NCBI GenBank assembly: GCA_964035545.1
Contig: OZ037767.1
Span: forward strand, 27,420,628 to 27,484,627
Length of the DNA stretch: 64,000 nucleotides
Direction: 5' to 3'
From: Bugula neritina
Lineage: Eukaryota > Animalia > Bryozoa
The notes under the pieces were generated by a model. That model saw only the letters and a list, made by a program, of their open reading frames with translations, searched no databases and was not told where the DNA came from. Below, piece by piece: positions 59,254 to 64,000 of the stretch. The position numbers were made by a program, and so were the translations under genes. Positions within the stretch are counted from its first letter, which is position 1; every line of letters begins with the position of its first letter.

Positions 59254-60295
59254 CTGTGCAATCTCATACCCTAGACAGAGCAGTAGCTGCTTTGTGAAAA
59301 CTAAGAATCTGCAGGAAAGATGTTACTTTGGTATAAAGTATATTATTCATCATTTCAGTGTTTTATATGCACACTCTCTGCTTAGTGGTCAGTTTGAAGG
59401 CATTTCTTACGGTTATTTATAGAACCATAGAACTGAATTTGGCTTTTATAAGTTATTAACGGGTGATCAAATAATTGTATCAACAAATCAACTCAATCAC
59501 ATTCATAGTGTGTGACATATTTACTGAGAAATTATCTCAATACATTTCACCATATTGTGAATGGCAAGAAAATAAAACTGGATATTATATTTTTTTATCA
59601 TTCTGACCAAATCATTTGCAACTTGAAATTGATGAGAAGGTATACAAATTCTAATACACTGGAAACCTGTTTTCCTTTGCTTTCTTGTTGGCATATTACT
59701 AGTAAATCAATTACATGCTAGTTGATAGTTCCTGTGACAAATGCTCTTTCAGACCGGATGAGCTGTACGATTGCCTCCTAAACTTAATATATTTAATATA
59801 TATGCTAATTACTTTCTGGATATATAAAATATGTTGTACATCTATGCGTAGGAATAGAGCAACAATGACGGTGTTTGTATTATTTATGAATATTCCCAAA
59901 TTAGTAATTTTGTTGGCTGCCAAATATTTCAGTTTTCTTTCTTAGCTTGTTACGTGCTATTTCAATGGTGTAGCATTTCAAATTGATTTATAGTAAAGTC
60001 AGTGCCAAAATGAAATATAATATAGTGATCACCCCACTATCCACTATGGCACCATTCTCAGAGCAGTTGGCACTGCTGTGCAGATGTTTACGACTATAAA
60101 TACCTCACACAGACACACCTGGATGTCCAAAGGCTGATAATCACAACAAAAATCATCATTAAAATAATATATTTTTGTAACAGGATTAGTGTGTTCAAAT
60201 TAAATAAACAATTTAAATAAAAATAATATTAAAACGTTTGATAAAGTAGAAATTCTCATATTGGAAGTCTACAGTCAACCCAGTGTTAACAGCAC

Positions 60296-62352
60296 TCATA
60301 AATCACTGGTCTGCTGGAAGACAGCTTGAGCTGCGCTTTCCTGCTCTGCGACGGTTGTAGGAAAATTCCTAACTGTTGACAAAGATACTGGAATGATGTC
60401 TCGCACTCGCAACCTCCTGTCTTCAACCAGTTGTTTAACTGCCCAGGATACAGGAACTGCGAGATAAATGGTCGATTCCATGGCATGAGATCCAATTAAT
60501 AGCCCAAATCTTTGTAGTTTGTGCTCATCTTCCTCACTCACAAGATATACTTGCAAACCGCAATCTCCTTTTTCCAACCTGCAACAAAAACTATTAAATA
60601 ATAAAACGTAAAACTATGGGCTTTCATCACAACTTTTTATATAATTGAAAAAATTAGCAGACAATATTAGGTAATTAATTTCCATTTATTAGATTTTCAC
60701 AAAGAATTAGCAGACTGTCATGTGTTTAACTGCCAGTATCAAGCGCTTGTTCATGAAGTAATGTGTTTTGTAGTTGAAACTATAATTCATAGCACTGTTT
60801 TTTGGCATTTTAAAAGAAACAGAAGGGAGTCTTAAACATTACTGACATCATGAAAAACTGCACTTCAATTTCTACTTTTGCAGCTCTGAACTACCTAATT
60901 TGATAATGTAATTGCCAAAAGTTTATATACAGGTATGTATCATATCAGGTATTCATTTAGATACAACACATCATTACTTACGATTCACTGCCCTCCAGAG
61001 TAAACGCAATCGAAGAGCCAACTCTTTGTCCATTTAGTTCTGCAGCCATTTGGGGTTCAATCCGGCCTTTTTTGTTTCCACACAGAACTTTTCTACCAAC
61101 GTAGTGGTGGAGCTGATTGTGATCCATGATATTTACTGTAGGCTCTTCAATTTTATAGTTGTCACCAAAGGTTTCAAACTGACAATGAGAAGAAGCCTGT
61201 AACTCATTTTCCAAATTTTGTTTATCAATTTTACAAATGGCTGCATCGCATGCAATAGTTTCTTCTTGGTTCAAGTATTTGATCGCGGGCAATGGTCGTT
61301 CAACAATCTTCACAACCAAGCCATGTGGGCTTAAGATACGTGGTGTATTGTGCCATCTCTCCTTTCCCATTCCTTCAAATATCGATTCACTATTTCCATT
61401 TCTAAGTAACTGTTCGTGCTCAGTTCCTTCCAGAAAGACATGTGCTGGAACCATGACATAGAGATTCACATCATTATGCTTTTCATCCACAGCGGAGACC
61501 AGCAGTTCAACTTTCGAGATAATTGAATTGTCTCGCCAGACATTGTATGGCTGCAACCAATTTATAAAAAGTTCTAGGTTATTATGGGTGGAACTCTTGA
61601 TATCAAATGTCGATACAGAAAATTTATGATAGTCAGATTTGCTTGACAACATTTTAGTTAGTTTTCTTTTTGCCTTCGAGACTTCTTTTCCACAAACCAT
61701 AATCTTGGAATGGTTTTTAGGTTGATGGTAGATGGTGAATATGCGCACACCTTTAGATCGAAGACACCTTCAATACAAATATAATATTTTATACACTAAA
61801 ACTTCAATCGACTCATTGCGCTTCAAGAAGCTAACTGCATGTGTCTGATATATTTTGAGTTTCAAAAGCTTATTGCATCTGGAAATATTTAGATTAGAAA
61901 AATAAATAAGTTATATAGATTTCTTCATCTTATCTACTAAAGGGAACCACATTTAAAGTCGCAAGATTACACATTATTATTATTGTAATGCACTTTCTTT
62001 CACTATTTACGATATGCCTTACACAATGAGAACTGCAGCAGTAAACTAACAAAGATTATAATATACACAAAAATGTTTTGTTTATAAAACAAAAAATCAC
62101 ACTCTAAACTTGACACCAGACATAAAAACTTTGACTAACAGGAGAATTCAAATTCCCATGACCTCTAACCAGGTGCGATAGGAGTTCAAATTTACTACAA
62201 GCTAAAATTTTTTAGTGTATTTAAATTATTTAGAGCTTCCACTCAACTTACATCTTGACATCATTGAGTAGCCTTTCGGGAATAATTAGGCTTTGATTTT
62301 CTAATTCACTGGCCAACTCTAAAACCATTAAATAAATTAGGTCAAATCTTTC
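60296..62352 (-). CDS. Uncharacterised trypsin-fold (PA clan, Nal1/Ssy5-like) peptidase with a Cys nucleophile motif; 5' end uncertain
   Basis: Exons about 62352-62252, 61767-60982, 60578-60296 join in frame (both junctions phase 2). Motifs YVMVPAHVF, ACDAAICKI, VGRKVLCG..KGRI, LEKGDCGLQV, FGLLIGS, YLAVPVSWAVKQL. Confidence 0.65.
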
Positions 62353-64000
62353 CTGATGTTAACTAATCATACGATGGTCTGATGCGCAGGTACATGCACA
62401 GATACAGAGTGCTCACACAAAATTTCAGATTCGAATAATTTATGCCATACTTTAGCCAAAATAACGATATATGTTGACATATTCATTCAAATGAATGAAT
62501 CCTGAAGATTTAGGAGCAATTGTGAAATTTCAAAAAAGTAAAAATAAGTAGGTACAGAAAGTGAGACATTTCGTAAAACCTGTGTTCTAGATAACGAATA
62601 TTGCATTCTAAACCTAAATTCATATAGACAATTAAAGAAGTGTGTTTTCATGATTGCGCCTGAATAAAATCATCAACAAACACAGTTTCGGTTGCTATTC
62701 AAGTGCATTGAATTCCCTACGTATAATTGTTTATAAATATTAGCTTGGCATGTGATCAGTTGTCAAACTAATCTCAAAAATGACGAATGAACATGAATGT
62801 GTAGAAATGTTATCTACTGCCTCAACAATACTTTTAATTCAGAAACATTTGCCACAAATCCAGCTATTGATTGTATATACTCAAGCATGATGATTAGTGC
62901 ACAATAAAATTAAGGTGATACAATATGATATTTTACTTAAAAAAAACTGTAATGCAAAGCATTTTAATGATGAAAGGCAATGTGTGATTGGCCTTGCAGT
63001 GACTTCAATGCAGAAAAGAAGTAATCAGAGTAGCATGCTAATACTTAAACTACATTCACTTGGCTGCCACTGACCATTAGTTTGCATACCAATAGAGACT
63101 ATGCATGAGTATAAAAAGGTGTGAAAATTAACTTGCCCTACATGGCCTACAGCATTCACCAACTTAGTCGAAACGGTTAGAGTTATGCTACATGTGAGAA
63201 AACTATTTTCAAGCAAACAATCCACTATGAGAAGTTGAAAACAGAAAAATCCACAATAAATGTTTTCATAGAAAAAATTGCCAATACTGCATTTCATCAT
63301 CCTCAAATTCCATGCACTGTTTTGCCTCAAATAGCAGATCATCTTACAATCAGCAATCTTTTGTTATACGAAATCAAATTAGTGCAACAAATGATATTGA
63401 AGAATAGAATATGGACACATACTGCCATTCTCTATAATAGGTTTCAGTATCAAAAATTAGAAAACCAATACATTGGGTATCAATGAGATTGTCCTTAAAG
63501 CCTCTTTGTTAAAGTAATTCCCCTTCATTCCAAGATGGATGAACTGTGATTTTGTCAGCGCATTCATTAACAGATGTTAAGGAAATTTTTGAGCTGATTG
63601 AATACAAACGTCAATTATGATGATCATCAACTGTTAATACTATAATCTATATTACTTCTAGTTTCTTACTACATAATACTCTATAATTATGATTATTATT
63701 TCACCATGATATATTCCATTAAATTGCACTATACTACATTAAATGATATTATTTTACATTAAATCATATTAGATCATGCTGCCCTTTTGAGTTTATAAAA
63801 TAAAATGCGCTCTATTTATGTAATTCTGCAACATAAAATATTCATTTTGTTGAAAAGCTACTCAGATATATATCCGAATTGAATTGACTAACATGCCACC
63901 TAACATACATTGAATCAACTTGTTCACAATTATTGTAATAAAGTGTTTAATAACATTAACAATTTATACCAGAAGTATATAATTACAAGATGCATACCTG

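Follow-up and report, generated by a model that had tools for sequence, protein, structure and literature searches.

Does a cellular, spliced animal gene encode a chymotrypsin-fold protease with cysteine in the place of the usual catalytic serine? To our knowledge, all recognised cysteine-type families of this fold (MEROPS clan PA) are viral, and the cellular members use Ser. The question is raised by a gene of the bryozoan Bugula neritina, located at positions 60296-62352 of a 64,000-nucleotide stretch (assembly GCA_964035545.1, contig OZ037767.1, 27,420,628 to 27,484,627), referred to below as the window. A first-pass annotation, made from the letters alone, had proposed that the gene may encode an independently evolved cellular, 3C-like cysteine protease. 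The analysis reported here leads to an undescribed bryozoan family, similar in structure to the rice protease NARROW LEAF 1 (NAL1), in which about half of the copies carry Cys for the usual Ser. We estimate at about 60% the probability that the window gene is a transcribed, divergent member of this bryozoan-expanded family of intracellular Cys-His-Asp endopeptidases, catalytic activity included; its assignment to the fold and to the family, taken alone, leaves little room for doubt.

Read on the minus strand, the region contains two open reading frames (ORFs), of 256 and 93 codons. The proposed TC/G splice between them is borne out by contigs from the Logan collection: among the contigs of four runs from four studies, aligned to window positions 59700-63700, the joint 60578/60982 was found in all four runs, and the joint 61767/62252 in two of the four. 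Each exon has a single locus in a whole-genome search, so that the spliced contigs are best explained by mRNA, and not by a retrocopy. The 403-nt intron (borders GAATC/GTAAGT, donor GT at 60981-60980, acceptor AG at 60580-60579) sits just before the nucleophile elbow, at the same position in all paralogs. Exon B opens with the G of a split Ser codon (G TTG GAA AAA GGA GAT TGC GGT, read as S-LEKGDCG) and ends with the stop codon TGA at 60298-60296; it codes for the elbow, the remainder of the second beta-barrel and a C-terminal helix, and GDCG is followed by FGLLIGSH and YLAVPVSWAVKQL, as had been read at first. Exon A, according to the models described below, would encode an alpha/beta module like the ATP-binding domain of NAL1, the complete first beta-barrel, in which His and Asp are located, and the initial half of the second. 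Because of the paralog profile matches (Table 1) and of the at least 25 loci sharing the same layout, the two-exon reading is far beyond chance.

The gene extends differently from what had been assumed. The small ORF at 62251-62358 is really an internal exon of 67 nt, which codes for the helix before the first strand and is homologous to the sequence IIPDKLMDLI of the paralogs; the ATG at 62328-62326 is therefore intronic. Since MVCGKE is internal to a conserved strand, a start codon within the recovered part was rejected. The spliced contigs run about 443 nt further 5', and the first 30 letters of this portion match L022:5000-5029 with one mismatch. They fall in a 46-nt exon, of which just the last 3 nt (63998..64000) lie within the window; beyond it, a further stretch of 5' sequence, about 400 nt, is present in the transcript contig. 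What the window contains of this transcribed gene of several exons is its 3' two-thirds; at least two further 5' exons exist beyond exons A and B.

Table 1. Features of the protease gene, listed in window coordinates; joints are given as the two positions brought together by splicing.
Feature	Position	Strand	Basis
Exon B, last coding exon	60296..60578	-	sequence, ORF list, paralog profile A2 (E 1e-22), spliced contigs
Cys codon TGC, nucleophile position of the G-D-C-G elbow (EKGDCG)	60560..60562	-	sequence; alignment with paralogs
Intron, 403 nt, GT..AG	60579..60981	-	joint 60578/60982, runs X1, X2, X3, X8
Exon A, main exon	60982..61767	-	paralog profile A1 (E 4e-62)
Asp codon GAT in CDAAI (IACDAAICKID), triad acid	61245..61247	-	sequence; alignment A1
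His codon CAT in VPAHV (VMVPAHVFLEG), general base	61440..61442	-	sequence; alignment A1
Intron, 484 nt, GT..AG	61768..62251	-	joint 61767/62252, contigs of X1 and X8
Internal exon, 67 nt, ..ELASELENQSLIIPERLLNDVK..	62252..62318	-	contig pieces 62250-62320; paralog upstream exons
46-nt exon GFVERHEEKLGINQA	63998-64043 (L022:4998-5043)	-	loose end of spliced contigs; AG and GT borders, in frame

A candidate 5' exon (VDKKDVSEKLDNAKL...QRVKK) is predicted at 65361-65551 in window numbering (minus strand; L022:6361-6551). It has a good acceptor, the donor AAG/GTAAGC and a phase that fits the 46-nt exon, and its product would be basic and probably disordered.

The three motifs proposed as a His-Asp-Cys triad, VPAHV, CDAAI and GDCG, were found where they had been placed, in the order His, Asp, nucleophile that is typical of clan PA, and with a G-x-S/C-G elbow. 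His and Asp are separated by 65 residues, Asp and Cys by 94. In the exon-A alignment A1, built on 17 family sequences, the dipeptide AH is invariant and Asp nearly so (at least 90%). Both Gly residues of the elbow are invariant in the exon-B alignment A2. In the model of a full-length homolog described below, the corresponding residues take their canonical places, with His190 predicted after a strand, Asp274 at a strand start and Cys370 in a pre-strand loop.

The gene belongs to a large family. When the whole genome (216 Mb) was searched with a paralog of weak similarity, 16 loci were identified, and at least 29 were found by using the exon-B profile. All share a common layout: a long exon that stops just short of the elbow, then a short intron, and an exon starting with x-L-x-x-G-D-S/C-G. 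Both exons could be recovered at 25 loci, the window gene and 24 paralogs, a number to be taken as a lower bound. The nucleophile is Cys at 14 of the 25 (TGT at 10, TGC at 4; one elbow reads GHCG) and Ser at the other 11 (AGT at 8, AGC at 3, within GDSG, GHSG or GQSG), the AGY and TGY codons always being a single A/T transversion apart. A maximum-likelihood tree was calculated on exon A only, leaving out the exon that holds the Ser/Cys trait. The two states are strongly clustered on this tree, with 4 changes versus a mean of 11.9 for shuffled states; a Ser-only clade of 14 members and several Cys clades can be recognised. Judging from these codons, Cys appears to have arisen inside a family of Ser proteases through one change between AGY and TGY, in either direction.

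Single members of the family show peculiarities of their own. The insert found between His and Asp in most paralogs (A1 columns ~360-435, loci L013-L021) is variable and ends with C..C ... C.H just before ND; this conserved Cys/His-rich segment might be a metal site. One paralog (L007:1486-2418, plus strand; G000:C7:12426681-12427589) has Asn at the position of the triad Asp (YLNNLVLL) and keeps His and GDSG; it is possibly a pseudo-protease inside the Ser clade. At three further loci, L063, L067 and L068 (G000:C6:8.74 Mb, C1:14.04 Mb and C8:8.81 Mb), exon B is accompanied by a truncated exon A, or by none within 4 kb, and these are probably fragments or pseudogenes of the family. The database protein KAF6034933.1, of Cys type, is nearly identical to locus L064.

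The first-pass annotation had also considered that the Cys, its TGC codon being one substitution from AGC, could be a sequencing error, a private variant or a recent, attenuating change. The spliced contigs, and likewise two metagenome contigs from JGI, show 5-6% differences from the window; they come from a sibling lineage, and may be used as an ortholog. The ortholog has 87% identical residues and keeps LEKGDCG, VPAHV and CDAAI; in the orthologous contigs the His codon shows the synonymous change CAT to CAC. Cys is read at this codon position in a metagenome contig that is independent of the window and comes from a diverged lineage. In addition, the contigs of X1, X2 and X3 (and of X8, from 60383) cover the site, which is absent from the variants listed. 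The same residue is present in 13 further paralogs and in a homolog from another cheilostome genus, Watersipora. An error or private variant, for which we see next to no chance, was rejected on the ortholog contig, the run contigs and the paralogs; the Cys, kept in ortholog, paralogs and Watersipora, is old, neither private nor recent, and the supposition that all relatives would carry Ser does not hold.

Comparison with the ortholog also provided a measure of constraint. Differences were counted at 48 of 768 nucleotides in exon A and at 9 of 279 in exon B, with a ratio of nonsynonymous to synonymous rates (dN/dS) of 0.65 and 0.37, respectively, and of 0.60 for the sum. Throughout the 1,047 coding nt there are neither indels nor stops, whereas the 403-nt intron shows 16 gap columns and a divergence of 5.1%. 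These figures point to a gene under constraint, though weak. A word-index protein search with exon A returned the ortholog as its sole match.

Compared over window positions 59700-62320, the public RNA-type contigs (X1-X8) and the JGI 'metagenome' contigs are all 5-6% off the window, whereas one DNA run matches it exactly; within the B. neritina complex, the reference individual seems to represent another lineage than the one behind most of the transcriptomes publicly available.

The fold was analysed on a full-length Cys-type homolog from Watersipora (P0020, 452 aa), modelled with AlphaFold from a 125-row alignment (predicted local distance difference test, pLDDT, 82.3; predicted template modelling score, pTM, 0.81; residues 1-48 disordered). 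In a Foldseek search of the PDB, rice NAL1 (PDB 8hau, 8pmg, 8pmm, 7y77) ranked first, with E 6e-7 to 4e-6 and template modelling (TM) scores of 0.4-0.5; factor B/C2, elastase and tryptase came next. By VIA-align, NAL1 gave Z 15.6-16.2 over 272-286 residues, residues 59-437 of the model being superposed on 92-456 of NAL1. A second tier, limited to the barrels (Z 11-12.5, 165-190 residues), was formed by streptogrisins, alpha-lytic protease, FAM111A and HtrA/DegS, which have a Ser nucleophile and other accessory domains; FAM111A/HtrA as the closest family was rejected on these values, Z being about 12 versus 16 for NAL1. Several hundred PA proteases aligned with the model at Z >=8, as expected for two six-stranded beta-barrels. 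The arrangement is that of NAL1, a four-strand, one-helix ATP-binding-like domain preceding the protease domain, and its Z is four units above the barrel-only matches. Exon A of the window itself was folded alone (120-row alignment, pLDDT 82.3, pTM 0.68) and compared with 48,161 PDB representatives: the top 50 matches are all PA-fold proteases (Z 4.5-6.6), and NAL1 is the only one among them to span residues 1-261 (NAL1 107-377). NAL1 is also the best Foldseek match of this model (E 0.028). Scores as modest as these are to be expected when the domain is truncated. Both the chymotrypsin fold and the likeness to Nal1/Ssy5 proteases claimed at first pass are therefore sustained by the models.

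NAL1 is composed of an ATP-binding domain (residues 89-172) and a serine protease domain (184-458) with the triad H234, D291, S385, spaced by 57 and 94 residues (PMC12012508). Like NAL1, the bryozoan proteins are intracellular and without signal peptide, and have the same triad order; in the window gene the nucleophile follows Asp by 94 residues, exactly as in NAL1. The identity in the structural alignment is about 12%, and no similarity can be detected at the sequence level; moreover, Ser385 corresponds to Cys in the window gene, and the bryozoan family, unlike NAL1, is animal, exists in dozens of copies and is fused to other domains. Further traits of NAL1-like proteases are ATP-Mg binding and a hexameric cage. 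Searches by protein-language-model features led to Ascomycota hypothetical proteins, Nal1_C and Peptidase_S64 (S64 feature score 0.93), and a shape search of the ESM Atlas to mollusc hypothetical clusters (TM 0.50-0.55), bacterial Nal1_C (0.44) and viral Peptidase_C3 (0.37). The nearest named clusters by these two approaches are yeast Ssy5/Peptidase S64 and the bacterial and fungal Nal1_C types, regulatory intracellular PA-clan endoproteases which use Ser and give no Pfam match here.

A different origin was also considered, namely the capture of a protease domain of 3C type from a picorna-like virus, followed by domestication, with Cys ancestral and Ser derived. Viral 3C and 3C-like proteases (MEROPS PA(C): picornain, NIa, coronavirus Mpro) share with the window gene the chymotrypsin fold, the His base and the Cys of a GxCG elbow, which is a viral hallmark. 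When predicted viral structures were searched with Foldseek, picorna-like polyproteins reached E 2e-6 to 1e-5, close to the values of NAL1, and the best hits to the exon-A model include coronavirus main proteases (Z 6.5-6.6). Judged by E-values alone, a kinship of the protease barrels with 3C-type enzymes would thus be possible. The viral matches, however, cover the barrels only, at TM 0.2-0.29, whereas those to NAL1 (TM 0.4-0.5) include the N-terminal module as well. No solved 3C protease is found in the top 50 for P0020, where such structures rank below S1, HtrA and FAM111A domains and NAL1 reaches Z 16 against about 12 for barrel-only matches. The language-model neighbours are cellular Nal1_C/S64 clusters, none of them viral, and the Cys forms are not basal on the exon-A tree. 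Unlike viral 3C, the window gene is a spliced cellular gene, with conserved introns, dozens of chromosomal paralogs and Ser-type sister copies one nucleotide away; domain fusions in the family are cellular, and neither a polyprotein nor a viral genome context or adjoining viral genes were seen. A viral capture is thus improbable, and a cellular, NAL1-like ancestry is favoured on account of the module, the Z scores, the neighbours, the introns and the fusions. As to the original proposal of a cellular 3C-like cysteine protease, the cellular, intron-containing nature and the Cys nucleophile stand, while '3C-like' fits the nucleophile only, because the two-domain layout is common to NAL1 and not to viral 3C.

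Several observations weigh against a catalytically active NAL1-like Cys peptidase in the window. Pfam searches with both exons (E <=10), with the paralog exons and with ten full-length homologs (E <=1) returned no protease family, Nal1_C (PF25819) and Peptidase_S64 (PF08192) included. Sequence and profile searches of the PDB (exon A, A1, A2, A3) gave nothing significant; the only hint was a match to the SPATE protease Pet at its GDSGS elbow (E 0.4). PF25819 found no match in the whole genome, but it was silent in control genomes too, so that this is weak evidence. The RNA data stem from a lineage that differs from the window by 5-6%, and it is only a guess on the record that classes the runs as RNA. 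The window gene is the most divergent member of the family, with 14-22% identity to the paralogs; the branch that it shares with its ortholog is very long (2.9 substitutions per site), which makes its placement on the tree unsure, and it has lost the Cys/His-rich insert present in most other members.

Being the most divergent member, with the insert missing, the window gene has a real rival interpretation as a non-catalytic or decaying copy, either serving as a pseudo-protease scaffold or evolving under relaxed constraint, in which Cys would be tolerated as catalysis no longer matters. A dN/dS of 0.60 would be compatible with it, as would an exon divergence (about 6%) as high as that of the intron (5%). 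Moreover, PMC4576821 reports that a laboratory swap of the nucleophile costs TEV protease about 10^4-fold of its activity. Nevertheless, the orthologs agree in the triad and in the motifs around it, although exon A differs between them at 31 other residues, and the reading frame is uninterrupted in contrast to the gapped intron. The gene also occurs, in spliced form, in RNA-type assemblies from four studies, and Cys is kept in 14 paralogous copies with intact His and Asp. We regard a decaying copy as unlikely, although clearly less so than a viral capture, and retain the active Cys peptidase as the preferred reading.

The taxonomic range of the family was explored by an exhaustive hidden Markov model search with the exon-A profile, which collected 215 proteins at E <=1e-3, 58 of them at E <=1e-30. 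The named relatives are all 'hypothetical' or 'uncharacterized' proteins of B. neritina or Watersipora subatra. Watersipora holds both types, GDCG in P0020 and GDSG, GESG or GHSG in others, so that the Cys state either is older than the two cheilostome genera or has recurred in them. Some members are fused to other domains: ankyrin repeats precede the protease in P0151 (B. neritina, 1,071 aa; Ank_2 E 9.5e-75), a GBP GTPase in P0061 (Watersipora, 955 aa; GBP E 4e-7, above the Pfam cut-off), and C-terminal LRRs follow it in P0147 (623 aa; LRR_8 E 5.5e-10). The ankyrin, GBP and LRR parts look like sensor or scaffold modules joined to the protease. A literature search on cellular Cys-type PA proteases, animal NAL1 homologs and protease expansions in Bugula found nothing relevant, which does not prove that the family is unpublished.

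A family protein, as modelled, would consist of a disordered N-terminus, an alpha/beta module superposing on the ATP-binding domain of NAL1, and a double beta-barrel protease domain. The analysis establishes the gene structure, its transcription, the family membership and fold, the conservation of the three residues and the age of the Cys state; whatever is said here of activity, substrates, ATP binding, oligomer state or function in the animal is inferred. In the mechanism that we propose, His, oriented by Asp, would activate the thiol of Cys; the thiol would then attack the peptide bond, forming a thioester acyl-enzyme, and the backbone NH groups of the G-D-C-G elbow would hold this intermediate stable. 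If NAL1 and Ssy5 and the modular fusions are taken as a guide, the enzyme would most likely make site-specific, regulated cuts in cytosolic or nuclear targets. A role in defence or signalling, or the immune or cell-death function raised in the first-pass annotation, may perhaps be suggested by circumstantial evidence: lineage-specific expansion, fast evolution, and the fusions to ankyrin, GBP and LRR domains in relatives, which hint at a possible protease arm of invertebrate innate immunity.

With this family, regulatory proteases of the NAL1/Ssy5 type are extended to animals. The approximately 25 paralogs, about half with Cys and half with Ser, separated by single AGY/TGY steps and represented in two bryozoan genera, constitute a natural series for nucleophile exchange. 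A more far-reaching proposal, to be taken as tentative and on balance doubtful, would see in these proteins the first chymotrypsin-fold cysteine peptidases encoded by animal cells, as far as we know, with Ser and Cys forms long active side by side in one family. The Cys-type domains would then act as effectors or processing modules of an intracellular defence system that has expanded and evolves fast, with its ankyrin, GBP and LRR fusions.

Some features were noted in the surroundings of the family genes. Long microsatellites of (TA)n and (TATG)n type flank several paralogs. Two frames adjoining paralogs resemble, by the look of their translations alone, parts of mobile elements: a 521-codon frame (L024:2266-3828, plus strand) is similar to a LINE-type reverse transcriptase, and a 294-codon frame (L007:2927-3809, minus strand) is gag-like. 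Upstream of the window gene and on the same strand, 4.7-5.0 kb past the window end, an open frame of 88 codons (L022:9736-9999, minus strand) shows a weak partial match to CAP-Gly (PF01302, E 0.002, below the cut-off); it may be part of this transcript or of an adjacent gene. On the other side, positions 59700-59833 correspond to the end of a 1,269-nt contig of X8 with a much higher word depth (70.9), and another, apparently well-expressed transcript therefore lies just 3' of the gene.

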